A stretch of DNA of 64,000 bases from Podarcis bocagei. Its lineage: Eukaryota. Shown here piece by piece: positions 7,059 through 60,582 of this stretch. The position numbers and the translations under genes are program-made. Numbering within the stretch: position 1 is the first letter of the stretch; each line of letters begins with the position of its first letter. The notes under the pieces were generated by a model. That model saw only the letters and a list, made by a program, of their open reading frames with translations, made no database searches and was not told the origin of the DNA. Location of the stretch: assembly GCA_964188305.1 (NCBI GenBank), contig OZ076898.1; one strand, written 5' to 3'.

Positions 7059-7244
7059 TCAGCAAGATCCGGTGTCGCTGCCTCCTTCGGTTTCCGGGAT
7101 GGGATCAAGGAGAGCTCGGCCGCGGAAGAGGTCGGGGGAGGCTGCGCCATTCCGGCCGATGCCACAGGACTGTGCGGCGTTGTGGATCTGCCAGAGTGTG
7201 TCGAGTGCCTCTGCCTTAGAGTGTTTCAGTAGGTCGGCCTGGCC
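7059..7244 (-). CDS. Inactive phospholipase C-like (PLCL2-like/PRIP) gene, exon 6, last coding exon
   Basis: cag|[28 protein letters not shown]...DTGSC*, homologous to the PLCL2 last exon (GQADLLKYAKNE...). TGA at 7059-7061. Confidence 0.9.
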
Positions 7245-7547
7245 CTGTGGGCGATGGAAGAGTTGAAGAGGTGATGAAAGGTGGTCACAGAGTCAAGGAA
7301 AGAAAACGAAAAACACACACCCAGAGGTCCAACGGCAAACTACGGTGTTGAAGGTAACCTGACAAGTTCAGCTGCTTAATAATTCTCCTTTTGGGGAGGG
7401 AGGAAGCCAACTTGCCTACAATGTATTATCGTTGGGCAACGTCACTGAAATAAACACAAAAGGTGCCCATCGTATGCAAAAGGAGTTGTTATAAAATAAT
7501 ACACATGAAGAGAATGAATCATACTGATGCAAATGGAAGTTGTATTG

Positions 7548-7928
7548 GCCTCTGTCCAGTATACCTGAAGGAGCGTCTCTACTCCCATTGTTCTGCCCAG
7601 ACACTGAGGTCCAGTTCCGAGGGCCTTCTGGCGGTTCCCTCGCTGCAAGAAGCCAAGTTACAGGGAACCAGGCAGAGGGCCTTCTCGGTAGTGGCACCCG
7701 CCCTGTGGAACGCCCTCCCACCAGATGTCAAAGAGAAAAACAACTACCAGACTTTTAGAGGACGTCTGAAGGCAGCCCTGTTTAGGGAAGCTTTTAATGT
7801 TTAATAGACTATTGTATTTTAATATTTTGTTGGAAGCCGCTCAGAGTGGCTGGGGAAACCCAGCCAGATGGGTGGGGTATAAATAAATAATAAATAAATT
7901 GTTGTTGTTGTTGTTGTTGTTGTTGTTA
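7548..7928 (+). mobile_element. L2-type LINE 3' end with microsatellite tail (similar copies at ~9434-9902 and ~23720-24085)
   Basis: Shared cctgaaggagcgtctc...gggccttctcggtagtggc...ctgtggaacgccctccc block in three places, each ending in (AAT)n/(TTA)n/(TTG)n. Confidence 0.65.
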
Positions 7929-8764
7929 TTGAAGTTTATCTCAACCTGTTTTAAAAAAAAGTAATTTCCTTTGTTGACACATTTTGGTAAAGGGGCAAAT
8001 CTTTCATCCCATTCTGACACAACAAAGACTTCAGCCATCACAACAGAGACTTAGTTCACTGCTTTTGCTTTTCTTACGCTGCTTTAATGAGAAAAGTGCA
8101 AATAAACCTAAACAAAAAGCTGCCCATTATAGTTGCAAAACACACACACAGAGAGAGCCATAACATTAGCAGAAATCAGAGCATAAGACCAAGCTAGTGG
8201 CATAGGAAGCTTCCTTATACCAAGTCAGAACATTGGTCCACCTAGGCTAGTCCTGTCTACAGTGACTGGCCGTGCCTCTCCAGGGTTTCTACCTGGAGAT
8301 GTCAGGGATTGATTGTGGGACCTGGATAGCTCAGTTGGTTACGAGTGTAGTGTTGATAATGCCAAGGTTGCAGGTTCGGTCCCTGCATGGGAAAGTTGCA
8401 TATTCCTGCCTTGTAGTGGGTTGGGCTAGAATCCTCAGGGTCCCTTCCGACTCTACAATTCTATGATTCTACGACTCTCAGTCTCTAACAAAAATTAAGA
8501 GATCAGGAGAAGTCAGTGTTAAGGGAGGAGTGGAACCCTTTCACAGAATATACGAAGAAATATAAAAGTCAGATAAGTTTGCAAGTAGGATTTGAACTGT
8601 GAACTGCAGTGAAGAACCATCTAGATATTAAGCTAAGCTGAAGAGGGGTGTTAGGTATAATATGCAGCAAGATAAGGGGAAATAAGGAAACCATGAAGGG
8701 ATGGAGGGGAAGTTCATATGTATTAGAAAGGGTGGTGGTAATCAAAGATGTGTTAAAGCTCTGG

Positions 8765-8810
<46 letters not shown>

Positions 8811-9839
8811 GTCAGTGTGCAGAGCAGATTGCTCTACCACTGAACCATTGGATTTTAAGCAACAATGTCATGCACTGGGGGAAATCAGCAGCAAGGAAGC
8901 CGTCTGGAGAGAAGCCATCAGCATCCCCTTTTAACCAAAGCAACTGAAGGAAAGCACAGCTCTAAGCAGCCCTCATGTTTTTCAAAACAGCAACAGACGA
9001 TCAAGATGCAAGGACATGGAACATGCAGCGCCCACCAGGTGGCAGTGCCTGCTCACCACCGGACCACGGACACTTTAGATTCTTTAGAAAGTCTGTGGCC
9101 CAAACACAACGTGGCATTCAATGCACAAATGCTTTTGACACCCCCCCCCCAAAAAAAACCCCCTAGAGCTGCAGCTTGAAATGCATGGGGAGGGAGAGAT
9201 CATTGCGTTTCTTGAATGCTGCGAGCCCAACAAAAATCTCCCAGGAAGAAAACGTCCGCAGGGCAATAGTATTTTGTTTACTTATTTGTTATGGTCTACC
9301 TTTCCTTCAAAAAGCTTAGAGTGGGAACTGTAGATGGTTCTCCCTTTCCCCATTTTATCCTTAGAACCCCGCCTGGGCAATAGGTCCCTGCTCTGGTTTA
9401 TCTCCCGCTTGGACCACTGCGCTCTACACAGAAAGTGACTCAGAAACTACATCTAATCCACTGGCTCCCAGTACGTTTCCAAGCACAATTCAAAGTGTTG
9501 GTGCTGACCTTTAATGCCCTAAACAGCCTCGGCCCTGTATACCTGAAGGAGCATCTCCACCCCCTTCATTCAGCTCGGACACTGAGGGCCAGCTCCGAGG
9601 GCCTTTTGGCAGTTCCCTGACTGTGAGAGAAGTTACAGGGAACCAAGTAGAGGGCATTCTGGGTAATTGCACCTGCCCTGTGGAACGCCCTCCTATCAGA
9701 TGTCAAAGAGATAAACAATGATACCACTTTCTGAAGACACCTGAAGGCGTGTTTTTATGCTTGATGTTTTTGTGTTTTTATATTATGTTGGAAGCTGCCC
9801 AGAGTGACTGGGACAACCCAGAGATGGGCAGGGTAATTG

Positions 9840-9902
<63 letters not shown>
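9840..9902. repeat. (AAT)n microsatellite; others at 1568-1592 (CA), 8767-8808 (AAT), 24023-24085 (TTA), 39935-39978 and 40263-40317 (AT), 57161-57200 (CATT)
   Basis: Direct inspection. Confidence 0.95.
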
Positions 9903-10068
9903 GGCTGAGAGGTAATGGCTGCCCCAAGGTCCCCCAGCGAGCTTTTTGGCTGACTGGGGATTTCTGCATTCTCAAACTTCTCTTTTCTCACATCCCGTGG
10001 CTGAAGTCCTGGCCCTGAGACCCTGTCCCAGAAAATCCTACCTCGCAGCAAGTGCTGCTCCTAATTAC

Positions 10069-10178
10069 CTTCAGGACAGTGATGTTCCAGGCAAAACTCT
10101 CCAGAGCTTTCTGCAGCTTCCGCCCTTTCAGGCCTTCCTTGGCCTCCAAACGGTGCAGCTCCTTGTGAAAACCCATCC
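10069..10178 (-). CDS. PLCL2-like gene, exon 5 (110 nt)
   Basis: AG/GT bounded; (G)[36 protein letters not shown] matches PLCL2 [36 protein letters not shown]; phases are consistent. Confidence 0.92.
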
Positions 10179-10879
10179 CTGGATAAATGTGGAAAGGGAG
10201 GCAAAGGAGACAACCTGTCACAGGCCTGCTGCTTTCTGGACAAGGTAGGACTGCGCTCCTGAAGGCTGGAAGAGCACACCCCCACCCCAAGGGTCAAGGG
10301 TGGCTGTGCGTTCACCCCACTATGGCACCTGGTCATCAGCTTTTGCGGGTTTTTCAAAGCGGTTCAAGAAACCCTTTCAGAGCACTCCAAAATCATTGCC
10401 CATCTACGTGCACAGAAAACAGTGCAACTGACTCTCAAAACTTGGGGATTATTGAAATACCGTATTTTTTGCTCTACAAGACTCACTTTTTCCCTCCTAA
10501 AAAGTAAGGGGAAATGTGTGTGCATCTTGTGGAGCGAATGCAGGCTGCGCAGCTATCCCAGAAGCCGGAACAGCAAGAGGGATCGCTGTGCAACGATCCC
10601 TCTTGTTGTTCTAGCTTCTGAGATTCAGAATATTTTTTTTCTTGTTTTCCTCCTCCAAAAACTAGGTGCGTCTTATGGTCTGGTGCGTCTTATAGAGCAA
10701 AAAATACGGTATATACCACAATAAATCAATTGATTTGAGTCGTGTGACTCAAATCGCATAGACTAGACCCATTTTAAAAAAAGCAATGCGGACTAAGCGT
10801 GCTTTTGGGGCCCTTCTGAGATCAGGGTCCCCGAAGCTTTAAGTTTCGTTAGTTTCATAGCAGATTCTCTGCTGCCTAC

Positions 10880-10955
10880 CTGCTTGTTGCACCTGGATAA
10901 TCTTGGCGTGAACGGCATCGGCTGACTCAATTAGCGTGCGGCCTGTTTGGATCAT
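10880..10955 (-). CDS. PLCL2-like gene, exon 4 (76 nt)
   Basis: cag|MIQTGRTLIESADAVHAKIIQVQQA G|gtaggc; homologous to PLCL2 MIQSLKALIENADAVYEKIVHCQKA. Confidence 0.9.
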
Positions 10956-11726
10956 CTGATGGCGGGGAAAGTAAAAGAGAGAGAAGGTGTGGTTAGTGGG
11001 GTGGGGGCTGAGCAAGCCTGCAAAGCACCCCACCTTACAAGAGGCCCTTGGCCCCACTATGCACAGATAGTGTGTACAGATAGGTAGTGTGTACAGATAG
11101 ATAGTAATTGCACAGATTCCAGGCCTTCTCTATGCGCTACTCTTTCTCACTGTGACAAAGTCTTTGCAGTTCTAGCTGCTAGGGCCCAAGAGCACGTTAT
11201 GTTAGTCACATGCCTCTGCCCTTAAGCGCCAATCCAGATCTGGAGTCTAGTGTGGGGAGTGTCTTTAGCCCTTTGCTATAGGCCCAATGCACATCAGGGA
11301 GTCCTATGCCTATCATGAGCATTGCCCAAGAAAAGATCTATGGGTTGCTGCACTTCAAACAAAAGAGCCTGGCAGATAGCTCAGTTGGTACAGCATGAGA
11401 CTCTTAATCTCAGAGTCATGGGTTGGAGTCCCACATCGGGCAAAACATCCATGCATTGCAGGGGGTTGGACTCTACGATTCTATGAATCTACCAGTAATC
11501 AGCTATCCAGGAAGCTGCTGGAGGCAGGGGCTGAAGCAGTGAAGCACAGTACCAGCTTGGCCACAGAGCACCTGAACAGCGCCGGTGCATATTGGATTGG
11601 CTTGAGTAGCACAGCCAATCTGCCAATCAAGACAAGAGGCTTGGCACCCCTAATAGTAGGGCTGGCCCTGCTGCCAGGGCCCCAGCAGCTGGCTGATGAT
11701 GCCATGTGCTGGCGCCAGGTCTGGTA

Positions 11727-11977
11727 CAGTTGTACCTTGGAAGTCAAAAGGAATCTGTTCCCGAAGTCCGTTCAACTTCCAAAACGTTCGGAAACCAAAG
11801 TGCGGCTTCTGATTGGCTGTAGGAAGCTCCTGCAGCCAATTGGAAGCCGCAGAAGCCTTGTCGGATGTTCGGCTTCCGAAAGAATGTTCCAAATCCGGAA
11901 CACTCACTTCTGAGTTCCAAACGTTCAAGGGCCAATTTATTCGGGAGCCAAGGTGTTTGAGATCCAAGGTACCACTG
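11727..11977. mobile_element. Tc1/mariner-type MITE (CAGTcGTACCTTGG TIR family; also ~15941-16190, 25400-25639, 62157-62407)
   Basis: TA-flanked inverted termini and a shared internal ctgattggctgcagg...cctgcagccaatcag palindrome. Confidence 0.75.
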
Positions 11978-12617
11978 TACTAAAATCCCCTTGAGGACAG
12001 AATAGGAAGGGAGTTTTCACACAATGCTAAAGCAGCTCTTGCTCCAGGCAGGATTGTAATGTAACAAAACCTACACGGGCCAGGGTGGGGAGAGATGCTC
12101 ATACCCATTAGAGAAGTGACTCTCTTCCATTTTGATCATGCACTTGGGAGGATAAACAACACAGGAGAACCTAAAACTCCACATAAGCTTTATACGTGGA
12201 AATGAGGCCCCTTAACTGGCACAACTTGGTGCATGTGCAGGGATGGCCACTCTATCCCTGTATCTCTATGGTGCAGGCCCCATAACTGGGCCTAGTCTTG
12301 GCTGCTGCCTAAAGAACTGCACATTATTGACTCTCTCTTCCATCTGAGTCTCAAGGTGAACGTGTGCTGCACTGAGAGAACAGGGATAGCGGGGGCAGGA
12401 GCCCTTGGTTAAGATTTGCACCACAAATGTGTGCCCCACCCCACCCCACCCCACCCCAAATTGATATTTTTGCTGGGCCTCGAAACAAAACCAGGAGATC
12501 AGAAAAGAGGGACCAACCCTGTTATGGAAAGGAAACAGCAGCTGATAACCCTGGCAAAGGCCCAGGGTCCATCCCCTCCCCCCGCCTCAACCCACCCACC
12601 CACCAGTTTACACTCAC

Positions 12618-12827
12618 AGTGTCGTAGGCAGCAAGCACTTTCCGCAGGAGCTCTGGGACCGGCCCCTGGGCCTCCATGGAGGGGTATTCCTCGCCCAGGT
12701 TGAGGGTGACAGCTGGGGGGCTCTCCTTCTCGCTGGGCTGCAGCCAAGTGGCCAACTTTAAGATGCACTGCTTGATGTTGGCTGCCGGCGTCAGGCCACA
12801 CAATTCCTTGAAGGAGACCAGAGCATT
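12618..12827 (-). CDS. PLCL2-like gene, exon 3 (210 nt)
   Basis: tag|[21 protein letters not shown]...[25 protein letters not shown]|gtgagt; homologous to PLCL2 [12 protein letters not shown]...YDM. Confidence 0.92.
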
Positions 12828-14385
12828 CTAGGAGAAGGAAAAGAGGGTGAGGGATGGGGAATGTCAACATGCCAGGAGGCCATAGGCCCCCCTGCCCCAT
12901 ACATTTCTGGCTGCTCTCTTGGACTACAGGTCCCTGCCCCCCCCAAAAAAACGACCCAGAGGGAGCAAAACTTTTGGTGGTCCTTGACTCTTTTCTGGGG
13001 GTGGATGTGGTAGCAAAAAGCTTCGGAGGCACTCAGAGCAACTGTGGGGCCTGCCCCTCACTTTTCTCCCCAGCTCCTAGCTTTGGGGAAGGGCAGAGGC
13101 TCACCGTAAGCACGGCATGGGGTGCTATTCATGATGGGAATGTGGGGGGGGGGGCTGCCAATCCCATTCTAAGCCAGCAGTCGCAGGGGGCAATCCTGTA
13201 GCTGGGACTTCCCAGATGTACCTAGCAGCACTGAGTTTCATCCGATGGCTTTGGGCTTGTTGCTTTCCCTCGGTCGCTTTTCTCGCAGCCTTTAAAATGG
13301 GCATAAGATCTCAGGTGGCACAGTGGGGCAGTGCATCTGGCTGTTAACCAGAAGGCTGCTGGTTCAAGCCCAACCAGGGATGGCTGTGAGCAGGATTCCT
13401 GTATTGCCGGGGGCTGGACTAGATGGTTCTTGGGGTCCCTTCCAACTCTACAGTTCTAGAGTCTAAGAAGATATGGGCAAGGCTGTGGACATTAGCAGCA
13501 ATCAGAATGATACTTAGCATTTCACTTTGTGGAGATTTCCGAACTGCTCAAAGCACTCCGGCTAAGTTGTCTTAATTGCCCCTCATACCAGTCTTGAATA
13601 AGGGAACTCTGGGTGGAAATTGAGTGTGAATGGTGGTTAGGTGAGGGTCTGGAAGAGGCAGATTCCTGGTTTACAGCTCATTATTTTAAATGCATTCACA
13701 CGTTCTCCTCTTTAGGAGGAATGCTGAGTCAGAGATAGCTGGACAGCCTCTCCAACACATCCCCACCCTCAAAAAAGAGGATTGCAGGTTTGCATCAAAT
13801 TTGCACATGCTAATTTATATTGTGTAGATGCAAAACAGAAACATGATACATGTCACTGTATTGGAGGAGACTGTGCCCAGGTGATGTGCTGTGTGTCCGC
13901 TCTGCCTGCTGCCCAGGTGTTGCCAACTGTTGATGGGCAATGCCGAGCGCCCCCACCTCTACTGGTTCTCCCTTCTTAGGGTTCTTTTATCATCCAGAAG
14001 AAGGACCAAAGAGGAGTGTCCTCTGCCAGCCCTTCAGACAGAGCAAGAGAGGAAAACCTCAATTTGCAGGCCTGATCCAGGTCTCCAGGTAAATTCTAAT
14101 CCATTTCCAAGACTCCACTGATTTTGGAAGAGGAAACAATATGGGGGGGGGGAGGTAGACGGAGCATGGGGTGAGGGGAGTTCAGGGTCTTCACAACCTT
14201 CTCCCCAGAGCAACCCTTGGAAGAGCAGAGAGGGGGAAATAAACCTCACTTCCACCAGCTGATCTGCACAACCTGTGTGACCTGTGAGTGTTTGTATGCT
14301 CTCTCTCTGTCTCTCTCTGTGTGTATGTGTGTAAGAGTGTGGCCCCCAGAGGATTGGCTAAAGGTGAGTGTGGCCCTCGAGCTAG

Positions 14386-14755
14386 NNNNNNNNNNNNNNN
14401 NNNNNNNNNNNNNNNNNNNNNNNNNNNNNNNNNNNNNNNNNNNNNNNNNNNNNNNNNNNNNNNNNNNNNNNNNNNNNNNNNNNNNNNNNNNNNNNNNNNN
14501 NNNNNNNNNNNNNNNNNNNNNNNNNNNNNNNNNNNNNNNNNNNNNNNNNNNNNNNNNNNNNNNNNNNNNNNNNNNNNNNNNNNNNNNNNNNNNNNNNNNN
14601 NNNNNNNNNNNNNNNNNNNNNNNNNNNNNNNNNNNNNNNNNNNNNNNNNNNNNNNNNNNNNNNNNNNNNNNNNNNNNNNNNNNNNNNNNNNNNNNNNNNN
14701 NNNNNNNNNNNNNNNNNNNNNNNNNNNNNNNNNNNNNNNNNNNNNNNNNNNNNNN
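14386..14755. other. Assembly gap (370 N) in PLCL-like intron 2
   Basis: Run of N. Confidence 0.99.
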
Positions 14756-16312
14756 ACTGCCCTCTGTAAAGCAAGACACATGGCCATTCTGCATCTCCAA
14801 GCGCTCACATCCCATTTCCCCTTGCCTTCTCCAATGCTTTGGGAAGGAGAAAACTACTGCTGCTTGTTTGTGCTTGGCCGGAGCAGCCCAGAGGAAAACA
14901 CAGCCGGGATGGGGAGGTGTGCTTTGTTGAATCAAGCCAGCTTTTTCTGTTGCAAATGGGGAGGGTGAGAGCGGCAGCTCCGCCCTTGGCAGAGAAGGCA
15001 ATGGGGGGATTAGAGAGACCAGAGGGCTCTCCAGCTGTTCATGGCTGTGACGGCTACAAAGCGAAGGCAGGTGGAAGCGAGATTTGTTATATCATAGGGA
15101 CACATAATTCGGCCTTATGCCGAATTAGACCACTGGTCGCTCTAGCTTAGCATTGTCTACACTGACTGGAAGCAGCTCTCCAGGGTTTCAGGCAAAGGAT
15201 ACTACTGATTAGCTTTTCTGATTGTCTCTGCGTCTTGAGTGCTGACTGCATTTGAACCAGCCCTGACACTAGGGCTTACAGGGCTCTTCCAATAATTCCT
15301 GGCACCCTCTACAAAATGGCGATCTCCTGCTGGTGTGGAAGTGGAGGCCTGTGGGACATTACTGCACTCAAACCAACAATTCATGTTTTGCCAGATAAGT
15401 GCAAGAAGAAGCTGAGGCTCACAGAGCTTTCCTGTAAAATTTGCTAGAGAGAACTCTGTGAGATCACTTCTTTTGCCTGCCTGGGCAAGAAGCTGTAACA
15501 GGACATAATTCCCTCCTGCCAGGGCACCTCTCTTTTTCTTCTACATGCTTCCAAGCCAACTCCACATATGTGTCTGAGCTCTGGAGCTCAGACACCATTT
15601 TGAACTTATATTTTGTATTTTTGTAACATATAGTAGTTATAAACCTGCCTTCATTTTGCTACAGTAACTGCTGCTTCAAAAACTAGATTATGTAAGTAAA
15701 TACTACTTGTACTTCTCCACAAAACAATGTGTGTGCAATTGTTATTTTTAAGGTGGAGAAAAGAGGTAATATCAGGGAAAATCCAGTCTGCCTTAAAGCA
15801 TCCTGGATTATTGTTTCTAGAGGGTTAAATCAACTTTGTCTTAGCTTCCAAATTTAAAGCTGCAAAGGATGGTACTCTGCTGATCTCGCTCACAAGAGCA
15901 AGGATAATAACAAAATAATATATGCCCTCCTTGTGCCTATACCCATACTTCGGAAGTCGTACTGAATCTGTTCCGGAAGTCTGTTCGACTTCTGAAACGT
16001 TCAACTTTCAAAGCACAGCTTCTGATTTGCTGCAGGAAGCTCCTGCAGCAAATCAGAAGCTGCAGAAGCCCCATCAGACGTTTGGCTTCCAAAATAATGT
16101 TCGAAAACTGGAACACTCACTTCCAGTTTCCAGTCATTCAGGAGCTGGAATGTTCAACTCCCAAGGCGTTTGGGAGCCAAGGTACGACTGTACTCCATAT
16201 TTTTAAAGTAGATAGGCATTCAGACAATTCAGACACCCTCCTCCTCCCCATCTCCAAGACCTGCAAGCCAAACTCAGAAGGCCCCATCCCCCATCTCCCA
16301 CTACCTGGGTAC

Positions 16313-20210: not shown

Positions 20211-20584
20211 AAAGTAAATGACCCCTGGACGGTTAAGTCCAGTCAAATGTGACTATGGGGTTGCGGTGCTCATCTTGCTTTCAGGCTGAGGGAACCAGCG
20301 TTTGTCCACAGACAGCTTTCCGGGTCATGTGGCCAGCATGACTAAACAGCTTCTGCCGCAACGGGACACTGTGATGGAAACCAGAGCGCACGGAAATGCC
20401 ATTTACCTTCCCCCTACAGCAGTACCTATTTATCTACTTGCACTGATGTGCTTTCAAACTGCTAGGTTGATAGGAGCTGGGACAGAGCAACGGGAGCTCA
20501 CTCCGTCGTGGGGATTCAATCCACCGACCTTCCGATCAGCAAGCCCAAGAGGCTGGGTGGTTTAGACCACAGTGCCACCCGTGT
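20211..20584 (-). mobile_element. Sauria SINE (different subfamily)
   Basis: Shares gggtcatgtggccagcatgact and gtacctatttatctacttgcac blocks with the other copies. Confidence 0.75.
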
Positions 20585-23186: not shown

Positions 23187-24022
23187 TAGTTGTGTCCTTG
23201 CCTTGGGCGGATACAATTGGGTTTCTTCCAAACCAGAACCATAGCTGGCACCCCCTCTCTCCTTTCACCGGCCCTTACGGTTGTGAAGACATGCATGAAA
23301 GGCTGTTTGTAGACTGAGAGCCATGACAGGAAAGGTAATCTGAGAGGTATCATCATCACCACCACCACCACCACCACCACCACCACAGTTGCCAACCTGG
23401 AGGCAAAATAAATGTGGAGAAGCACAGTCATAAATGCACTGTGGGCAGAGCTGTCAGCTCAGCAGCAAGGGAAAGTAACTCTGCACGGGATCAGAGGCAA
23501 TCTTGACAGTCCTAATAGGACTGTCGCTGGATGGTGCTTTGGTGCAGAGAAGCAGTTCCAGGTTATAAGGTCTGACCTTGGAACTTGAGGGCTTTGAGCC
23601 CACCCATCACCCACTCGGCACCTTTTCCTTGCATGCCACTTCCTTGGCAAGAGCCACAGAAAGCACCTGAGCAGGAAGGAATGGGGTTCTCAGGACCTGG
23701 CTGCCCCTGAGACGTTTCCAGGTCCTGTATACCTGAAGGAGCGTCTCCACCCCCATCGTTCAGCCCGGACCCTGAGATCCAGCGCCAAGGGCCTTCTGGC
23801 GGTTCCCTCATTGCGAGAAGTGAGGTTACAGGGAACCAGACAGAGGGCCTTCTCGGTAGTGGCGCCTACCCTGTGGAACGCCCTCCCTTCAGATGTGAAG
23901 GAAATAAGCAGCTATCCTATCTTTAAAAGATATCTGAAGGCAGCCTTGTTTTTAACACTTGATTGGAAGCCGCCCAGAGTGGCTGGGGAGGCTCAGCCAC
24001 ATGGGCGGGGTATAAATAATAA

Positions 24023-24086
<64 letters not shown>

Positions 24087-25061
24087 CATGCCCTGCCATG
24101 GGAACTCTATGGAGGCTGACACTTCTTTTTTATTTTCCTGGGCCACGCGGAGATGCAGGCGGGTCCCAGATCCGAAGAACATAGGGGAGGATGGTTACCA
24201 CCCTGAGCTGGGCAGAGACAAAAATCGACAGCGAGGGGGTGGAGATGAGTCAGACATCAAAGTTACATAATGTACCGTCTCTACGGTTACCACAGGAAGG
24301 AGGGGAAATTGATGGTTCCTAAATTGACACAGATCAGAAGATTGGGATGGAGCGGGAGATGTTTATCCAAAGTCATTATTGGGTTTCGGCAGCTGCAGGA
24401 GGGCGTGGGAGGGAAAAGGTGAGATGAGGAGTTTGGGGGCAAACGGGGGTCAAAGTTCCTGGCCTGAACACAAAAGAATGAGTCCAACCGATTTTAGACA
24501 CTAGAACCTGTTCTCAGTGCCAGCGGTTCATTCCTGGAGCATGTGAAGTCCAGAATTCTCTCCTTGCCAAGAGAACATCATCCCTAAGTTGAGTATTGAC
24601 AGCCAGATCTCACACACCTGAGTCTCACCTGCCAGTCTCTCAACCTAATTTTATTAACGGCATCCAAGATCTCAGGCAACCCCTTCATTACAAGCTAAGG
24701 ATAAGGTAGAGTGCATAACTCAATGGCAGAGCACATGCTTTGAATGCAGAAGGCCCCAGGTTCAATGCCTGCTGTCTCCTGGTGGTTCTGGGAAACGCAC
24801 CTGAGGCGATGTCTGCAACAGTCATAGGATTCTTTGGGGAAAACCATGGCAGTTCAAAATGCAATCCTAGTGCTTTATGTTGCATATGTGGTCTGAATAG
24901 CAGGTTGAAGGCAGCTTCTTCCTATGACATGGTCTTATATGAATCTGCCTCATGCTAAATCTAAAGCAATTAGGCATGTTCTGCCAACCTTTCAACGACA
25001 AGTTTACGGAGGACAGATGGATGGATGGCAATGAGCCCATTTGTGTCCTGTCGCTCTAGAG

Positions 25062-32300: not shown

Positions 32301-33043
32301 AGGCAGATGTAACCTGCGTCAGTCAGGCAGTGTGGTGACGACAATGTAAAAGGAAGCATTTTTGTTTTATTTTTGGCCATTTGTTTAATTAGTTCTATCC
32401 GTGCATTACACCTGAATAATGGAGGTACACAGACAAGTGCTCATGGAGGGAGGGGGGACTGCCCATAAATGGGCAACACTTTCCCCCCTCCAGTACTTGA
32501 CAAAGATGGCCTTTGTGTGCGCCTCTCAAAAGGATCCTGAACTACCTTATCTAGAACACCTTTCTGTTCCCGTGCCCTACTGTGCAACTGAATTAGCAAC
32601 GTAAGTTTAAGTGCATACTTCTTCTCTGTTTACCTTGCCTTCATTTCCCTTCTACTGCCCTGTTGTTTTCCTCCGTGTCAAATTTTAGATTGTACGTTCC
32701 TTAGGGCATAGACATGTCCTCTTACACTCTCTAAAAACGCAGGATGAAACTTGGAGACCAGAGTTCAAAGCCCAATTCTGTTCAAGTCTCACTGGGTGAC
32801 CTCAAGGGAGGGTGCCATCTTTCAGCCTCAGTTTTCCTATCTGTGAAATGGAATGACTAAGAGCTCATTGTACACCTCAAAGATGGGGAGGGGAAGGGGA
32901 GCCTTTGCAATACACTTGCTCTATGCTTCACTGTAGCTTGGATCACATAGGCCAATGAGTTGGCGTTCCCGATCTTTTCTCACCCCTTTCAGGTTGGTCA
33001 AATTTGTACCCAAGCCACCGTCCACAGCACTCAGGCCACAGAA

Positions 33044-33394
33044 AAAGGTAAAGGGACCCCTGACCATTAGGTCCAGTTGTGGCTGACTCTGGGGTTGCAG
33101 AGCTCATCACGCTTTATTGACCGAGGGAGCCGGCGTACAGCTTCCGGGTCATGTGGCCAGCATGACTAAGCCACTTCTGGCGAACCAGAGCAGCGCACGG
33201 AAATGCCGTTTACCTTCCCGCCAGAGTGGTACCTATTTATCTACTTGCACTTTGACATGTTTTCGAACTTCTAGGTTGTCAGGAGCAGGGACCGAGCAAC
33301 GGGAGCTCACCCTGTCGCGGGGATTCGAACCACCAACCTTCTGATCGGCAAGCCCTAGGCTCTGGGGTTTAACCCACAGCGCCACCTGTATCCC
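33044..33394 (-). mobile_element. Sauria SINE
   Basis: Reverse complement of the 34387-34745 copy. Confidence 0.8.
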
Positions 33395-34386
33395 ACATAC
33401 AGAGTCCCACTCAGGCCACATACAGAGGGAATTAACCCACTCCATCATCACAACAACACTGTTAAAGCTAGCGGGAAGCTATCCCAAGGTCGACTAGTGG
33501 GCTGCGTAGCCAAACAGAGATTTTATTTCCCTAGCCATGCCCTTGCCCCATACCAGGTCTCAGGATTCCATGAGTTTAGCTGCCAAGGTAACAGAGCTTT
33601 AGCACTTCTTGCTGTGCCTTTCCAGATCTTCCCCTGGCCTCCAACACCCTACCCTTGTGCACTTGCAAAAAATAACATATTCTATCACCGCCATGGGCCC
33701 ATCCCAGGGAGTGAACCACAATCCACATGCACCCAAAACCCCGGGTGATTTTTTTCTTTAGAAAGGCCACTGGAGGAATGGTAAGCCTGTTCCGTCAACT
33801 GCACTCTGTGCATGAGATCCATTTAGCCTTTTCAAAACACGCTCCCGACTGCAGGGCAAGCGAATTCCTTCTCCTTCAAGGTGCATGAGAAAGGCCTAAC
33901 AAGCTGAGGGGTGGCAGAGGGGCTGGAACGCAGCCCACACACCCTGTATTAATAGCACTGGAGCAATCAGTGCTTAAAATAGGCTGCGAGGAGCAAGGAG
34001 GCGGGTCTCGGGTGACAGCAACCTATTCTGGAGATGAACAACCGTGACGCAAAAACATTTAAAAGGCCGCTTTTAGAAACACGCACCTACCAAGGGCACC
34101 TACATCAGAACCCCGCAGTAAACGCCCACACTGAGGTTCATGCCCTATAGATGGGGGAAATAAAGGGGGGAGCAGGGGGGAGTCAGTAATATCAAGATGG
34201 GACACCTGGAGCAGAGTCACACCTCGAGGTTTTTGGCACATGGTGTTTGCTACGGCTCAGCCCTACCACCGCCATGCAGGAAAGTCTCCAGTGCAAAGGA
34301 TTCTGGGAGGGACCTGAGCCTCAGCAGCAGAGGAGGTGTTTTGCAGGCAGAAGCCACCAGGTTTGACCCTCGGTTAAAAGGGTCAA

Positions 34387-34745
34387 GGGATGTGGGTGGC
34401 GCTGTGGGTTAAACCACAGAGCCTAGGACTTGCCGATCAGAAGGTCGGCGGTTTCAATCCCCGCGATGGGGTGAGCTCCCGCTGCTCGGTCCCTGCTCCT
34501 GCCAACCTAGAAGTTCGAAAGCACGTCAATGTGCAAGTAGATAAATAGGTACCGCTCCGCGGTGGGAAGGTAAACGGCATTTCCGTGTGCTGCTCTGGTT
34601 CGCCAGAAGCGGCTTAGTCATGCTGGCCACATGACCCGGAAGCTGTACGCCGGCTCCCTCAGCCAATAAAGCAAGATGAGCACCACAACCCCAGAGTCAG
34701 CCATGACTGGACCTAATGGTCAGGGGTCCCTTTACCTTTACCTTT
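34387..34745 (+). mobile_element. Sauria SINE, full length
   Basis: tRNA-like head (ggtggcgctgtgggttaaacc...ggtttcaatccc), conserved body and (tttacc)n tail; 4 similar copies in the window. Confidence 0.8.
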
Positions 34746-37700
34746 AAAAGGATTAAGAGAGCGGGTGACAAGAACGGCTCTTCGCCTAGTTTCCTAAGAG
34801 AGCTGCTGCCCGTCAAGAGCAGACAACACCAACATAGCTCAGTTGGTACTATTTCTGAGACGCTTCATCTCAGGGTTGCGGGTTCAAGTCCCACGTTGGG
34901 CAAAAGATTTCTGCATTGCGGAGGGTTGGAATGGATGGCCCTTGTCCCTTCCAACTCTACGATTCCATGAACATTGGGACACATGAGACAACTAGCCAGT
35001 CCTGGGAATAAGGTCACTTTCGAAGTTGATTTCACGGGCTGGGGATGATGCTCTGCACACGCTGCCAAACAGCTGCTGCCAGTCAAAGTAAGCAGCAGAT
35101 CTCTGGTGACTGGTCAGAGGCAAAAGAAAGCTAGGTTATTGCATCTTTAATAGTCAACATGCACCACCTGCTGAAATTCCCTATTCCATGCAAATATTAA
35201 AGGCACAGGAGCCCCCATGTACCCAATTCTTTCTTTTTAAAAATCTGGCTGCCCTAAGCAGATGCAGAACCCCAAACTCCACCCAAGTGCAGCAGAGTTT
35301 TGAGTGCCAGTGTTGCAAAATTCATTTTGAAATAGTAATTTGAGTGACACTCAAGAAACAGCTCACACTGCGAATGCATGAAATCTGACAAGATCACTAG
35401 TTTAAATGATACCGTGAAGCAGGGATCTCTGCTTGAGACCTGGGAAAGTCACTACCAGTCAGAGTACACGGCTGGTAGTTAGACAGACCGGTGACAGCTT
35501 TGTATGGCTCTATTCAAACTTAAATATTGTCAATGCATTTTTAGGTAGTAAGTATTAGGGTGGCCAGCTGCAAAAGGAGAACAGGACTCCTGCACCTTTA
35601 AGAGTTGTGCAGAAGAGGAAATTTTAGCCAGTGTACGCAACTGTTAAAGTAGTAGGAACCCTGTCCCCCTGATGCAGTGGTGTCCAAACTTTTTTCAAAG
35701 AGGGCCAGATTTGATGAAGTGAAGGGCCGTGGGGCCGCCCAAATTTGTTGGCCTTTTCTTAGGATTGAAGTTGTTGACCTTTTTTTACAATTTTAGCCCA
35801 AAAGTTGTTGAGCTTCTTTTTGGGATTGAAGCTGTTTTTAGGATTTTACCCCAGGACATATACTGCCATGGGGGCTGGATTAAATTGACCAGCAGGCCAA
35901 GGATTAGGTCCCCGAAACGGACTTTGGACATGCCTGCCCTTATGCATTCGGCCACCCTTGTAACTGCAGTGCTATTTTTCTAGAAAAAGAGGTGCTGAAA
36001 CTCACCATCCCTTGTTCTCTTATAATGGCAATGGTGCCCACCTGAGAGGTGCCGGAACTGAGTTCTGGCTGGGGGGCAGGGGGAGCCCTGCTTACCTTAG
36101 GCAATTTCAATATTTTGCACAAATTATTTTTTTCTTCCCTGCCACAAGACTTCTCAAAAGCATAATTGTAAATGCTGCAATGCATACATCTTCGATTAGA
36201 ACATATATACTTATTTTCTTCCCCTTCCTGCCCACCCCCCACATAAAAAGTCTGGATAAAGAAAATTTGCTCGAGAGCATTCTCAACCTCACCCCCCATT
36301 TATTTCAGTTTCAAGACTGGGCTACATGAACTATCACCAACAGTTTCTTTCTATGCTGCTTTTTGGTCTAGGCCCCCAAAGTGTTGAGCAAGAAAATACA
36401 ACACACTACGTAGAACCATCCGACTCAGTAGATAGCTATAACATTAGACTTGTTCACACAACAGCATCTCATCGTTGAGGATTAAAGACACAGACCTTAT
36501 GGGTTCCCTTCCATAGGCATGCAGACTACTAGGGGGAGATGGGGTGCAGCCAGGATCCCACCTCCCAAAAAACTCATTCTCAGAACCCATTTTCAGAGCC
36601 AAAACCCAATCCTGGAACATGTGAAAAAATAACGTCATGTGAGTCCTGCAACAAAACATTATGGGGTAACGTTCTCCTGACCTTCAAGCCAGCTATGTCC
36701 TCCTCCCCTTTTTCCCTTAAAAAAGGCTTAGCTGCTTTGGGGTCTCACCACCACTCAAGAGTTTTTCTCCCTAAATATTTTGTATGCACTTCTGCATAAC
36801 TTGAGGTCCCCACACCACAAGCCTGCTGGCACTTCCCCCTTGGGCATGAGTTTTGGCTACGTGAGGACTGGCACCACAATATAACATGGAGCGCTTTTGC
36901 CCCATCCCAAGATGAGAGGTGCTGGGACTCAAGTGTGCCTGAAAGTCACACGCTGCTTGACTTGAAAGTTCTCCCACCAATCTCAGGTGCATGTAGGCTG
37001 GCCAACTATAGTTACTTTTGTGCTGAGAGAGGCGCCTTCTCAGGGCTGGCATTAGGGCAGAGCCCATAATTGACAACTGCATTGGGGATCCCTTTAGGAG
37101 GGGGGAAAGTCCAACCCAGAACTCTAAGCAGTGCCAGCGGCTGCAACAAGATTCCTTTCAAATTTCCCACAATGCCCAGGAGCAATGCTGAATTAAGAAA
37201 TGCTCTCCCCAGAGAAGTTTGCCTGGTGCCTTCATTACAAAACATTTGTAAGTGAAAACATTTCTCTATAACCAGGCTTTAAATGTGTTTGTGGAAGAGG
37301 GATTGGTGTTATTAATTAATTAAATTTGTATACAGTGGTACCTCGGGTTAAGAACTTAATTCGTTCTGGAGGTCCGTTCTTAACCTGAAACTGTTCTTAA
37401 TCTGAGGTACCACTTTAGCTAATGGGGCTTCCCACTGCCGCTGCATCACCACCGCACAATTTCTGTTCTCATCCTGAGGTAAAGTTCTCAACCTGAGGTA
37501 CTATTTCTGGGTTTGCAGAGTCTGTAACCTGAAGGGTCTGTAACCTGAAGTGTCTGTAACCCGAGGTACCACTGTACTGCCCTGCATCCGTAGGGCAGTT
37601 CACAACGCAAAGTACATAATAAAAATAAGAACAAAAACAAATCCCACAACTCATTTAAAAGGGCATTGGATGTCAATCAGCCAAAGGCATGGTAGAAGAA

Positions 37701-39769
37701 TGTTTTCGCCTGGTGCCTAAAGGTATATAATGAAGGCAACAGCCAAACCTCCCTGGGGAGAGCATTCCACAAACTGGGAGCCACTGCAGAAAAGGCCCAT
37801 TCTAGGGTTGCCACTCTCCAGGCTTCTCGTGGAGGTTATTGGTTTGTTTTCGTTTTGCTATTTATGTTCTCATTTTGTACTTCCATGCTGTGAACTACAA
37901 TGTGGTCTTCGGATGAAGGGCGGCATACAAATTTAATAAATAAAAAATAAAACTATAACTAGATTCAACTGTTCATAACCCTGCGAATGCAGCCGGCAGG
38001 TGAGCGCTGTCTTCGTCCAGCATTCCCAGCAACAGGCATTCAGAGAACGTAGCCACCATGAGCAGCCGCTCAAATTCAGCCATCTCAAATTAATCTTTTC
38101 ATATGGAGCGGCCCAACTGGCTATTAAAAAAACAACAATCCACGTGGCATCTGTGGCCCTACCGCCCTTAATCTTCCTACCCTTCGCCTTCTCTAACGCC
38201 CAAGGAAGTTGCCATTTCCAGAGGGCCCCCAAATATTTCCGTCACGGAAGCAGCAGCACAAGGAAGGTCACGTCACAGCCGAACAAGTGACCACGTGATT
38301 CTGTTTCCTTGGATCCTCCAGGCCAAGGAATGGCCTTGGCCATTTGGATTCTGGTAAACAAGACATAAATAACCCAAGGGAACCCGAGAACCCCTTCACA
38401 GCAGGCGATGATGGAGGGGTGGGGGAGATGACAGCAACATCCTTCCAAGGACACATGCACTGACAGGCTTATTGGCTCTCCCCTCGCCCCGCCCCGTGCG
38501 ACATGAGGCTTGGCTCATTTGCAGGAGCGATCAGCAACTATCTGCTGTGTGTGTGTACCTTTCTGCTTGCTCCAGTTCAAGGATCTCAGCCTGGTGAAGG
38601 AACTCAGCCGGGGAAGGGAGTGAAAGAGCTGGCGCCGCTTGTAGCTACATATGCGCCATGAACTTAAAGCATATTCCCTCCCTGCTTCCAAAGAATCCTA
38701 GGAACTGTAATTACCCTTCAAAAAGAGTTGCCATTCGCGGCACCCTTGACAAGCTTCCATTTCCCAGGTTTCTTCTTCTGTTTTGGACAGGCGGAGAGGG
38801 CTTTAAATGTGCTTTGAATATACGGCATGTGCACAGCCAATAGTAGAGAACAACCGGGCTCAACTGACAAGCGGGAGCTTCGCTGACATGCAAATGTTGC
38901 GGCCAATGTGACACAGTGATCTGGCCAGCCTTGGTTTGCAACAGGGACTGGGCCAGGCACAGGCAAACTTGGCCCTCCAGATGTTTTGGGACTACAACTC
39001 CCATCATCCCTGACCACTGGTCCTGTTAGCTAGGGATGATGGGAGTTGTAGTCCCAAAACATCTGGAGGGCCAAGTTTGCCTATGCCTGGACTGGACCTT
39101 TATGCCCGCTGTGGAAATGTCAGAGACACCTTCCTAGGATTTTCGTACGAACTTCAACCAGAACTAGGGGCGGGGGGTGGGAAGTTACTACTGCAGGCTC
39201 TTTAGGGAAAGGCCGTAGCTTAGAGGTAAGGCGTCTGCCTTGCATGCAGAAGGTCCCTGGTTCAAAGCCTGGCATCTCCAGGTAGGGCTGAGAGAGAATA
39301 CTGCCTGACACCTTAGAGAGCCGCTGCCAGACAGCGCAGAGCTGGGGTCTGACTCAGAATATGGCAGATTCCTATGTTCCAGTGGGAAGAGGCTCTGCTT
39401 AGAAATACTGATTAGGCTCCCCTTTTTCAGTCTTAGAAATTAGCCAGGCACCAGGAGCATTTTGCGACTGGCACAGGTTCAACTGCGACCACATGGGGAT
39501 CTCTGGAGGCCAGGTTGATGACTGACGTCTCAATCTGGCTAGCCCCTCCAGCTTTCTTAAGAGAGTAAGCAGAAGAGATTATTTATTGCATTTATATTTC
39601 ACCTTTTTCTCCATGGAGTACATAGTTTACCCCCCCCCCTCAGTTAATCCCTACAATGACCCTGTGAGGTAGGGTCAGGCAGTGACTGGTCCAAAGTCAC
39701 CCAGTGAGATTCATGACTGAGTGGGGATTTGAACCTTGTTCTCCCAGGTCCTCGCCTGACACTCTAACC

Positions 39770-39932
39770 CATGGCAACCTAAGGCCTGTGGGCCAGATCC
39801 GGCTCAATTGCCTTCTAAATCCGGCCCACGGATGGTCTGGAAATCAGCGCGTTTTTACATGAGTAGAATGTGTCCTTTTATTTAAAATGCATCTCTGGGT
39901 TATTTGTGGGGCATAGGAATTTGTTCATTCCC

Positions 39933-39981
<49 letters not shown>

Positions 39982-40260
39982 GGTTTTGGTGTCTTCGGGT
40001 GTCTTCCCGTGTAAGAGTTGGGGTGTCTAGGCGACGTTTCGACGAGGTCTCACTCGTCATCTTCAGGCTGGTGCTTTCGGCTTCTTGTTACTGGCTGGTG
40101 CTTTCGGCTTCTTGTTCCAGTAACAAGAAGCCGAAAGCACCAGCCTGAAGATGACGAGCGAGACCCCGTCGAAACGTCGCCTAGACACCCCAACTCTTAC
40201 ACGGGAAGACACCCGAAGACACCAAAACCTGCATTCCTGTACCCGTGAAAATCTACGAAA

Positions 40261-40321
<61 letters not shown>

Positions 40322-40387
40322 AGCCCCCCACAAGGTCTGAGGGACAGTGCTGCTGAGCCCCCTGCTGAAAATGTTTGCTGACCCCTG
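39770..40387. mobile_element. hAT MITE (TSD ctctaacc) inserted in a SINE and itself hosting the Penelope-like palindrome
   Basis: TSD at 39762-39769 and 40388-40395; 3' terminus gtttgctgacccctg. Confidence 0.7.
39977..40234. mobile_element. Penelope-like retroelement terminal fragment in inverted (palindromic) arrangement, with hammerhead-like motifs, inside an (AT)n tract
   Basis: 118-bp arms (39977-40094 / 40117-40234) with 2 mismatches; each arm carries CTGAAGA-stem-GAAACGTC; flanked by (AT)n. Confidence 0.65.
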
Positions 40388-40946
40388 CTCTAACCACTAC
40401 ACCACACTGGCTTCCCAGAGTTCTTCTGCTATGGGAAAGCTCTATAAATTAAGTAGGTAAATAAATATGAGGAAAGCAAAATGTCACTTAGAGAAGGACC
40501 TATTTTTTTTAAGCTTGAATTTTGTTTTTAGTCTGGATTGTTTTATTTGAGGTTTTAATGTGTTGCAAACCGCTATTAGCTTATATATCTGAGTTTCTAA
40601 CACTGCCCCTTTTGTTACTTGCATTTGGAAACCCAGCCAGGAGCCCCCCTGCAGATGAGGAAAAAGAGACTGTCATCCACAAGCAAGATGACTAGCTGTC
40701 CTGGGTACCCCATAAGACTGACCTCCCATAGCTGTTAGCACTGTAGTTCCCACTCGGACTGAAGGGAGTTGTAGTACACATCATATGGAGGACACCAGAT
40801 TGGGGAAGGCTGGCCTACGGCTACTGAGCAAGTTGTTAAATACAAGCATGCAGTAACCAAGTGATGTAGGGGAATGAATGAAGCAGACCAAAGTTGGGAG
40901 AAAATCTACCATTTGTGCCACTTTTGGCCCTCTCTCATCCATAAAT

Positions 40947-41270
40947 GGGACGAAGGTGGCACTGTGGGTTAAACCACAGAGCCTAGGACTTGCCGATCAG
41001 AAGGTGGCGGTTCAAATCCCTGCAACAGGGTGAGTTCCCATTGCTCGGTCCCTGCTCCTGCCAACCTAGCAATTTGAAAGCACGTCAAAGTGCAAGTAGA
41101 TAAATAGGTACCACTCCGGCAGAAAGGTAAACGGCATTTCCGTGTGCTGCTCTGGTTCGCCAGAAGCAGCTTAGTCATGCTGGCTCCCTCGGCCAATAAA
41201 GCGAGATGAGCGCCGCAACCCCAGAGTTGTCTGCGACTGGACCTAATGGTCAGGGGTCCCTTTACCTTTT
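40947..41270 (+). mobile_element. Sauria SINE
   Basis: Same family; flanked by catccata direct repeats. Confidence 0.8.
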
Positions 41271-41959
41271 ACATCCATATACATTTTATGGCTGCAACAT
41301 TTTAGAAATGACCTGCCTGTGCAGATGGACCACTGCCTATGAGGACACTGTAGATGCAACATGCATGTTGCTATTATGTCTGAAGCAACCGGGTCACACA
41401 TTCCAGAAATACCCATGCATACCCAGGTAGCACGGTGGCAGCAGCTGTGCTCTTTGCTCTGAGAACCTGCATGTTCACTCATTCACACTAATCCTTGGTT
41501 TGTCTTAGCTCTTTGTACCAAGTGGGTCTGCATAAAGTGAGTTTTGAATATGCCTCCTTATGAAAGCAAAAAAAAAAAAAAAAAGATTCACATGTACGGA
41601 GTTGGAAAGCTGTTTTTGTTGTTGTTGGTATAGGGGCTCAAATGTTTCCTTTTGTGGGAGCCGTTGACAAAGGTCAGAAGCTCCAACTTCAGTGTGGATT
41701 TACAAAGGTGAAGGCTGACCAGGCTGATGATCTGGAGTATGGGGGGGGGAGCGTCTCCAGAGGAGAGCAGCTTACTCTGAACCCCTGAATCAGTTTTCAA
41801 CGTCACACATCTCAGCCTTGAAGGTCTCAAACTACAATGAAGATCAGAGCACCTCTGGGTATATGCAGAGTGCCTTTCTCTGTTGCCAGTGAAAAACCCC
41901 AAGCAGGAACCCCAGCACCTGTTGTTTCTGAAAAGGGATGAAGTTGGAAGGGGGGTGGC

Positions 41960-43200
41960 AGTGAAGCGGGGGCGCTCTCGGCGCGGAGAGGGCAAGGCAA
42001 AGCTGCTGCGTTTGGAATCTCTCCTGGATCCCTAGGTTAGATTTAGAAGGTCATATTAGGACAGAAATGGTGGCACGCGGTGGCGGCGACAGGAGAAAAG
42101 AGGTGATTAGCTGCCGCTGTTATGGGGCTCAGTAAGGATGTCCTTAAGGAGGGGGAGCTGGGAAATCCCTGCGGGGATTCCAGATTAAATTGGGTGGGGG
42201 GAACGAACCTTACACACACGTGCCAAGGGAGTCGGAGGGCGGTACAAGGAGGGTGGAAGTCGAGCGAGCAGCACCCACCTTCATGATGCCGGCGGCGGGG
42301 GCGGTCCTGGCCAGGCCGGGGGGGTCCCTCTCGGCCGAGTTGTCGCGGCTGCTGCAAGCGGAGCCTCCGGAACCGGAGCGCAGCGGACTCAGGTCGCCGG
42401 GGGCTCCTGCGGCTGTAGTGGCGGCGGCTGCAGGTCCTTCTTCTTTTTGCGGGGCGCGGGGGGGCCCGGGCCGGGGCAAGCCCGAGGGGGGACCACCGGG
42501 GGCTCCGTCCGCCATCCCCCCGCGGGGCTCCCAGCAGCCGCACCGGCCCGGCCCAGACGGGGTCCTCAGCTCCTGCCCCAGCGGCGCTTGCACGCCTTTT
42601 GGCGCGCGCCCCTGACCCCCGGCTTGGCAATGCCGGCTCCCCTTTGCCGGGGAAGGAAGGAAGGAGGGATACAGCCAGCGAGCGAGCAGACGCTGCCGCT
42701 GCCGCCGCCGGGGGTGGAGGGTTGGTGGGACGGCTGGGGCGGGGCCAGGCGCAGCACAGCCCCTACCCCAAACCGCGGCGCGGCCCCACGAGCGAGAGAC
42801 CCGCGCAACCGCGCGCCCCGCTGGCTCCTCCTCCCCCGCGCCCCTCCTCCCGCCAAGGCGCTCTTTGGAGCCCCGGAACCTTTTTTTCCTCTTGCCGGCG
42901 CTGCAATCAAAGGAGAGAATTCGCCCCTGCGCGTGCTGCGCTCGGGAGGGCCTGGAGCTCACCCCGGAGGGCTGCTCGGCACCCCCGCCCCCGCCTGTTG
43001 GATCCCGCGGCGGCAGGGTTAATGCAAGGGATGCAAATGCAGGGCTTTTCTCCGTTCACACGTGATTGTTATGGCTTCAGTGCCTGCGTGGATAAGCCTC
43101 CTCGAAGGCGCAGCCCCCCCCCCGCCCCCGAGTTGCCATCAGAACGGGGCTTGGCGGGAAAAGGGCAGCTCCCACTCAGCAGGACCTCGCCACGTTTTCA
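41960..43200. promoter_or_regulatory. CpG island / promoter of the PLCL2-like gene
   Basis: Very GC- and CpG-dense stretch with GC boxes (GGGGCGGGG ~42736, CCCGCCCC ~42983) spanning exon 1. Boundaries are approximate. Confidence 0.85.
42279..42515 (-). CDS. PLCL2-like gene, coding part of exon 1 (79 aa, MADGAPGG...AGIMK)
   Basis: ATG in GGGATGG context inside a CpG island. The Gly/Ala/Pro-rich N-terminus ends in IMK|GTGGGT, phase 0, like PLCL1/2 exon 1 ending in SIIK. It splices in frame to exon 2; the total CDS is 3303 nt (1100 aa). Confidence 0.82.

Positions 43201-60321: not shown

Positions 60322-60582
<261 letters not shown>

Follow-up and report, generated by a model that had tools for sequence, protein, structure and literature searches.

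The 64,000-nucleotide stretch of Podarcis bocagei DNA studied here (contig OZ076898.1 of assembly GCA_964188305.1; hereafter the window) carries on its minus strand, from 42515 to 7059, an intact six-exon gene for a protein of the PRIP/PLCL family. This gene is very probably the lacertid ortholog of a third vertebrate PRIP/PLCL gene, plcl5, which is ancient, catalytically dead and of the PRIP type. Six collinear blocks were obtained by tblastn with the snake and tuatara orthologs, and the joined frame encodes 1100 amino acids (3303 nt) with one terminal stop, no frameshift and GT-AG boundaries at five of five introns. An earlier reading of the window, made from the letters alone (the sequence-only reading), had proposed six exons, 1100 residues and canonical splice sites; the blocks and the reading of the boundaries showed its coordinates and numbers to be exact.

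Phylogeny and position of the third PLCL gene

A word search with exon 2 returned two tiers of proteins. The upper tier (P0001-P0075, 67-92% identity) included squamates, tuatara, crocodilians, birds, turtles, caecilians, salamanders and frogs, and among fishes lungfish, coelacanth, bichir, sturgeon, paddlefish, teleosts, sharks, rays and chimaera. True PLCL2 appeared from P0076 on, at 62-65%. Both tiers were represented in Pelusios, Xenopus laevis, Latimeria, Protopterus, Erpetoichthys and Callorhinchus, and one protein per tier, from different loci, was found in Podarcis raffonei, P. lilfordi, Lacerta agilis, Varanus komodoensis, Hemicordylus, Liasis and Thamnophis elegans. The separate PLCL2 and PLCL1 genes expected by the sequence-only reading were found in relatives of the source species: true PLCL2 lies on other contigs in P. 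raffonei, P. lilfordi, L. agilis and Varanus, and a lacertid PLCL1 was recovered from Zootoca. Retention in lizards, as stated in that reading, holds but was understated, for every non-mammalian group of jawed vertebrates sampled keeps the gene. Outgroups and a gar PLCL1 seed were taken from a search of 50%-identity representatives, which merged the vertebrate PLCLs into few rows. The gar PLCL1 query returned ray-finned fish only; with a paddlefish PLCL1 seed, tetrapods and mammals were reached, and the PLCL1 sequences obtained came from Zootoca, snakes, geckos, opossum, tenrec, platypus, sharks and chimaera.

Maximum-likelihood trees were built under LG+C20+F+G4 on about 1070 columns with quick searches, and support was assessed by the Shimodaira-Hasegawa-like approximate likelihood ratio test (SH-aLRT); a FastTree analysis and an approximately unbiased (AU) test were added. 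In a 56-row tree, where PLCL1 was represented by ray-finned fish only, SH-aLRT support was 100 for the third clade, 99 for PLCL2, 100 for PLCL1 and 96 for the third clade together with PLCL2. The corresponding values in a 50-row tree were 100, 99, 99 and 97, and here all three clades spanned chondrichthyans to tetrapods with a branching order near the species tree. FastTree (LG+gamma) gave local support of 1.0 for the third clade, 0.996 for PLCL1 and 1.0 for the third clade plus PLCL2, and PLCL2 was again monophyletic. The window gene grouped with vertebrate PLCL1 and PLCL2, apart from PLC-delta, PLC-eta and PLC-zeta, with the amphioxus and invertebrate PLCL sequences as outgroups. A distinct paralog with PLCL2 as its nearest relative had been predicted, and this was the arrangement in every tree: PLCL2 and the third clade were sisters, and PLCL1 was the outgroup to both. 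A topology uniting the squamate third-clade and squamate PLCL2 sequences in one clade was rejected by the AU test (log-likelihood difference 704, p-AU 5.5e-5). The branch leading to the third clade is long (0.23 vs. 0.11-0.12 for PLCL2).

The window protein shares 67% identity with the third-clade protein of a catshark (74% in the C-terminus), 61% with the lacertid's own PLCL2 (59%) and 56% with PLCL1 (50%; 56-58% across comparisons with PLCL1). The lizard protein is therefore nearer to its catshark counterpart than to lacertid PLCL2 or PLCL1. Since PLCL2 and the third clade also each extend from chimaera to tetrapods, the duplication is older than the radiation of jawed vertebrates. The third gene would have arisen with PLCL1 and PLCL2 before that divergence, most simply via the two early vertebrate genome duplications (1R/2R). 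Such an origin would fit the paralogous blocks of mammals, in which PLCL1 accompanies SATB2 and STAT1-4, PLCL2 accompanies SATB1, KCNH8 and RAB5A, and the place of the third gene corresponds to STAT5, KCNH4 and RAB5C.

The position of the gene points the same way. In the window its upstream neighbor on the same strand is STAT5. In the loon, STAT5, GHDC (with GH3 N, M and C domains), the PLCL gene, orexin (PF02072) and a KCNH channel lie on one strand within 32 kb; in the gharial GHDC is directly upstream of the PLCL gene (L003:1-5257), and in the channel catfish the downstream neighbors are orexin and, beyond it, a KCNH channel. The arrangement STAT5-GHDC-x-HCRT-KCNH4 that marks the third PLCL orthogroup is thus represented by STAT5 in the window and by the flanks of the orthologs. 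The spotted gar has been reported to carry the block cavin1-stat3-stat5-ghdc-plcl5-kcnh4-rab5c (2026 paper, PMC13398235). The name plcl5, offered tentatively in the sequence-only reading, therefore exists, and the place of the gar gene between ghdc and kcnh4 is that of the loon, gharial and catfish orthologs.

Domains and catalytic residues

Exon 2 matched PF16457/PF00169, PF09279, PF00388, PF00387 and PF00168, all above the gathering thresholds, giving the order PH, EF-hand-like, X, Y and C2 that is the order of the PRIP/PLCL family. Fold-level similarity to active PLC-delta1 (structures 1djg and 1qas) was strong, with 394 bits and an E-value of 6e-117 over residues 145-751 of exon 2. Residue states were read from an alignment with PLC-delta-like, PLCL1, PLCL2, lamprey and invertebrate sequences that held 11 third-clade proteins, from shark to lizard. 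Numbering follows rat PLC-delta1, in which His356 is the general acid/base and Asp343 and Glu390 are calcium ligands.

All 11 third-clade proteins have replaced Asp343 (by Val, in turtle by Ala), His356 (by V, I, L, T, G or A) and Glu390 (by I, V or S). Asn312 is replaced in most tetrapods, by Ser in frog, turtle and bird and by Gly in tuatara and squamates, and the loop that carries His356 is four residues shorter in squamates. The window protein has Ala for His356, Val for Asp343, Ser for Glu390 and Gly for Asn312, so that four of the six residues of the active phosphoinositide phospholipase C set (EC 3.1.4.11) are replaced. Retained throughout the clade are His311 and Glu341 and the substrate-phosphate contacts Lys438, Lys/Arg440, Ser522, Arg549 and Tyr551; His311, Glu341, Lys438, Ser522, Arg549 and Tyr551 are shared with PLC-delta1. 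PLCL2 lacks His356 only and keeps Asn312, Asp343 and Glu390, whereas the two fish PLCL1 sequences aligned lack the same four residues as the window protein. The third-clade core is thus more degenerate than that of PLCL2, and not more than that of fish PLCL1. Because PLCL2 and the lamprey protein keep Asp343 and Glu390, the catalytic losses in PLCL1 and in the third clade look independent. The product of the window gene is predicted to be a pseudoenzyme that cannot hydrolyze PIP2.

Outside the active site the protein resembles PLCL1 and PLCL2. The basic PH-domain residues common to both (K-K-V-R, the R of YSRFF, and SKK) are retained in the third clade, as are the N-terminal motif KKTVSFS(S/T)MP, the C2 domain and a C-terminal extension of about 270 amino acids. 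The motif, a putative PP1-docking site at residues 88-99 ahead of the PH domain, aligns with PLCL1, PLCL2, lamprey, amphioxus and C. elegans. Residues 828-1100 share 50-59% identity with PLCL1 and PLCL2 and 44% with amphioxus PLCL over about 240-290 amino acids. Neither the N-terminal extension with the PP1 motif nor the C-terminal extension is present in PLC-delta.

Selection and transcription

The gene is under strong purifying selection. Pairwise ratios of nonsynonymous to synonymous substitution rates (dN/dS) for exon 2 were 0.03 against the snake, 0.13 against the gharial and 0.18 against the loon (821-828 codons). The window protein aligned without gaps, 1-1100 to 1-1100, with P. lilfordi CAI5790226.1 (99.4% identity), an annotation that independently validates the gene model over its full length, and shared 99.2% with P. 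raffonei XP_053219741.1. Identity of the third-clade protein is 99% within lacertids and 89-94% over squamates as a whole.

Transcription and splicing as modeled were observed in a close relative. Reads were mapped to positions 7000-12900, and run X5 was derived from a closely related species that shares about 65% of the 31-mers of exon 2. Record 9 of this run is a spliced minus-strand transcript contig of 5418 nt, whose three listed pieces are exons 3, 5 and 6 (Table 1). The pieces meet at the predicted junctions, with one-base shifts that reflect ambiguous G's at the boundaries. Exon 4 is accounted for by the 77 unlisted record positions between the pieces of exons 3 and 5, by read depth and by one variant at 10913. 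The 3010 record positions ahead of exon 3 leave room for a 5' untranslated region and for exons 1 and 2 (2721 nt). In two stranded RNA runs of the same related species, raw reads covered the exon bins at about 1-5x and in one orientation only, as expected of minus-strand RNA. A spliced transcript, the absence of which would have spoken against the sequence-only reading, was thus found in a closely related lizard.

Annotation and distribution

The gene itself is already known: dozens of genomes carry an annotation of it, and in fish it has the name plcl5. In P. raffonei, XP_053219741.1 (third clade) and XP_053215238.1 (true PLCL2) bear the same NCBI name, "inactive phospholipase C-like protein 2", and the third-clade entries of Danio and Ictalurus are labeled PLCL2. 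This shared name (P0001, P0002, P0010, P0036 and others) is a systematic ambiguity of annotation, of the kind anticipated by the sequence-only reading when it supposed an automatic label of "PLCL2-like". Also in line with that reading, which called the gene functionally unstudied, the literature searched held no study of any member of the clade, and nothing relevant on third PLCL genes, PLCL2 duplicates or PLCL paralogs from genome duplication. No mammal was present among the 75 best third-clade clusters of annotated proteins, in a database that contains mammalian PLCL1 and PLCL2 (the latter for example in echidna), and the PRIP literature counts two isoforms in mammals (PMC5390332); this supports, and does not prove, the loss in mammals that had been proposed.

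Proposed function and alternative explanations

PRIP-1 and PRIP-2 regulate GABA-A receptor trafficking, insulin secretion, lipolysis, autophagy and PI3K signaling. PRIPs have been described as Ins(1,4,5)P3- and PI(4,5)P2-binding scaffolds for PP1, PP2A, GABARAP, GABA-A beta subunits and phospho-Akt, with "two isoforms in mammals", and PLCL2 has already been described as inactive (PMC5390332). The window protein shares with PLCL2/PRIP-2 and PLCL1/PRIP-1 (p130) the family architecture and motifs, from the PP1 motif to the C-terminal extension, and with PLCL2 the loss of His356. The loss of the catalytic residues, together with retention of the PH domain, PP1 motif and substrate-phosphate contacts, makes a PRIP-type scaffold likely. 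With Asp343, His356 and Glu390 replaced throughout the clade, PIP2 would not be hydrolyzed. The PH domain would bind Ins(1,4,5)P3 and PI(4,5)P2 through the basic residues that PRIPs use, and KKTVSF would recruit PP1; PP2A, GABARAP and the beta subunits of the GABA-A receptor are further possible partners. The protein would then act as a non-catalytic scaffold like PRIP-1 and PRIP-2, controlling phosphorylation and vesicle or receptor traffic. By analogy with these two proteins, the scaffold role and all of these binding activities are the most likely assignment. From teleosts to birds the gene has kept its place in the STAT5-GHDC-[gene]-orexin-KCNH4 block, with no mammalian member in the databases searched.

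Other explanations of the same locus were weighed. The public name, together with the greater similarity to PLCL2 than to PLCL1, might suggest that this is the true lizard PLCL2, or a copy of it that arose recently in squamates or sauropsids, moved beside STAT5. We consider this extremely improbable, and the two genes per species, the trees and the AU test given above refute it: the lizard protein does not nest among true PLCL2 orthologs, as a translocated PLCL2 would, and its relatives have a PLCL2 of their own. Both genes occur together in Podarcis, Lacerta, Varanus, Pelusios, Xenopus, Latimeria, Protopterus, Erpetoichthys and Callorhinchus, the third clade holds sharks, chimaera, bichir, teleosts, coelacanth, lungfish, amphibians and all sauropsid groups in an order that mirrors the species tree, and the gene occupies the same position in catfish, gharial and loon. 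Little credence can likewise be given to a decaying or unexpressed relic whose frame happens to be open still, before the loss that was completed in mammals. The additional X-box changes of squamates (N312G and the shortened His356 loop) and the low raw RNA depth over the exons would suit it; against it stand a 3303-nt frame in six exons with no stop or frameshift and with every splice site canonical, dN/dS of 0.03-0.18, the high identity among lacertids and across squamates, a spliced contig of full-length size, and strong conservation of the PH domain, PP1 motif, Y box and C-terminus. It is also very unlikely that the protein is an active phosphoinositide phospholipase C of the PLC-delta type. 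Although the full PH-EF-X-Y-C2 architecture, the strong similarity to PLC-delta1, His311, Glu341 and the substrate-phosphate contacts are all present, none of the aligned third-clade sequences, shark to lizard, retains His356, Asp343 or Glu390, and squamates and tuatara have lost Asn312 as well, while PLCL2, lacking His356 only, is already reported to be inactive (PMC5390332).

The gene could also be a real third paralog whose function has diverged from that of PRIP-1 and PRIP-2, so that it serves, for example, purely as a lipid or inositol-phosphate buffer, or as a factor tied to the neuronal program of the neighboring orexin and KCNH4, rather than as a phosphatase scaffold. The long branch of the clade, the active site more degenerate than in PLCL2, the tight linkage to orexin and KCNH4 for over 400 million years and the expression of kcnh4a in zebrafish HCRT neurons (PMC13398235) all lend something to this idea. 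It nevertheless appears rather unlikely, since PLCL1 and PLCL2 share KKTVSF, the PH-domain residues and the C-terminal extension with the third-clade protein, and linkage alone is no proof of co-regulation.

Identification of the window gene as plcl5, a PRIP-type scaffold, is weakened by several points. The fish gene was equated with the third clade by position and by clade membership, with no sequence labeled plcl5. The evidence for mammalian loss is confined to the annotated proteins of the 75 best clusters, and no mammalian genomes were searched. Lamprey PLCL was sister to the third clade plus PLCL2 in the 50-row tree (89) and grouped with PLCL1 in the 56-row tree (89); with its position unsettled, the assignment of the duplications to particular rounds of genome duplication is a matter of inference. 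The RNA support comes from a close relative, perhaps not the source species, and covers junctions among exons 3-6 only, and the dN/dS of 0.03 against the snake involves a saturated dS. All functional statements draw on conservation with PLCL1 and PLCL2.

On the reading as plcl5, the name PLCL2 in public records hides a third gene and can corrupt orthology tables and expression comparisons. Nothing here is conceptually new, and the value lies in a corrected label and in the evolutionary and residue-level description of a clean case: an ohnolog kept over 400 million years and not found in any mammal of the databases searched. As a third constrained paralog exists, loss of function of plcl1 or plcl2 in fish, amphibians, reptiles and birds may be buffered. 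It is conceivable, though doubtful, that non-mammalian jawed vertebrates have a three-member PRIP system in which plcl5 is non-redundant, perhaps neuronal, and tied to orexin and KCNH4, and that its loss at the base of mammals re-partitioned functions onto PLCL1 and PLCL2. In that case, conclusions on PRIP biology drawn from double-knockout mice could not be applied directly to zebrafish, Xenopus, chicken or reptiles.

Gene structure

The coordinates of the exons, of the transcript pieces and of STAT5 are collected in Table 1. The six exons with one giant exon probably repeat the layout of PLCL2, and exon 2 is a single uninterrupted exon also in snake, loon, gharial and catfish. The start of exon 1 corresponds to residue 1 of the 1100-residue P. 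lilfordi protein. The surroundings of exon 1 (42-44 kb) are GC-rich (0.59), and 42516-42761 is conserved with the upstream flank of the snake ortholog, as expected of a promoter or 5' untranslated region. The sole run of N in the window (14386-14755) lies about 1.9 kb past the donor of exon 2 and 1.6 kb before the acceptor of exon 3. Since neither the snake protein (residues 905/906) nor the lacertid proteins show a break at the junction of exons 2 and 3, no coding exon is hidden in this gap, and the reading frame is unaffected by it. The catshark third-clade gene is 255 kb long.

Table 1. Coordinates of the PLCL gene, of its transcript contig in a related lizard and of STAT5 in the window.
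Feature	Position	Strand	Description
Exon 1	42515-42279	minus	237 nt; start codon at 42515; 79 codons, low-complexity Pro/Gly/Ala-rich N-terminus
Exon 1 donor	GT directly after ...ATCATGAAG	minus	boundary reading
Exon 2	18796-16313	minus	2484 nt, phase 0, 828 codons; putative PP1-docking motif KKTVSF, PH, EF-hand-like, degenerate PI-PLC X/Y boxes, C2
Intron 2	16312-12828	minus	holds assembly gap 14386-14755
Exon 3	12827-12618	minus	210 nt; PLCL-specific C-terminal extension begins here
Exon 4	10955-10880	minus	76 nt
Exon 5	10178-10069	minus	110 nt
Exon 6, coding part	7244-7059	minus	186 nt including stop; 3' untranslated region continues below 7059
Contig piece, exon 3	12618-12829	minus	record positions 3011-3222
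Contig piece, exon 5	10068-10177	minus	record positions 3300-3409
Contig piece, exon 6	7000-7243	minus	record positions 3410-3653; directly abuts the exon 5 piece
STAT5 3' exons	63441..55743	minus	collinear with bird STAT5 exons; open reading frame 62371-63021 carries STAT5 sequence

Neighboring genes

Raw tblastx of bird segments against the window gave mostly GC-rich noise, and the STAT5 matches alone were usable. Three separate STAT5 exons of the loon (L002 324-455, 609-704 and 839-1048) matched one uninterrupted stretch of the window, 62431-62865 on the minus strand, inside open reading frame 62371-63021. In archosaurs the conserved upstream neighbor of the PLCL gene is GHDC, at L002:5072-7706 in the loon, and STAT5 is not the direct neighbor. 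GHDC was not found between STAT5 and the PLCL gene of the window (42516-55742) by tblastn with loon and gharial GHDC exon pieces, a search whose positive control (gharial to bird) worked and whose matches here were intronic repeats only; it was also absent by Pfam from the ten longest minus-strand open reading frames of 43-55.7 kb. Within 10 kb of the snake ortholog no neighbor genes were detected, including GHDC in the 10 kb upstream (L001:1-10000). GHDC may have been lost or relocated in squamates.

The sequence-only reading had placed the gene between STAT5 and orexin, and the orexin flank was not confirmed: no orexin exon was found anywhere in the 64-kb window, or in the 10 kb that follow the snake ortholog downstream, by six-frame scans for AAGILT, GNHA, CC[RK]Q and AGIL or by tblastn with loon orexin exon 2. 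Orexin lies 1.4-3 kb downstream of the PLCL gene in loon and catfish, and with none in 1-7058 the squamate gene must be farther off or outside the window. KCNH4 was likewise not found in the window.

Repeats and other sequence features

Intronic dispersed repeats at about 7400-8000, 8200-8600, 9360-9600, 10350-10740 and 11730-11920 showed very high depth on both strands in the RNA runs and in the transcript contigs. Open reading frame-like fragments with the motif AFSVVAP.LWNALP were seen on the plus strand at 7463-7804 and 23811-24119, outside the coding part of the gene, and a degenerate copy of the motif, FSFVAPTLWNAFP, was seen on the minus strand at 58021-58284. Within intron 1, positions 39971-40276 hold an inverted pair of segments of about 100 nt with 75-79% identity to sequence downstream of the snake ortholog, which is probably a transposable element common to lizard and snake.

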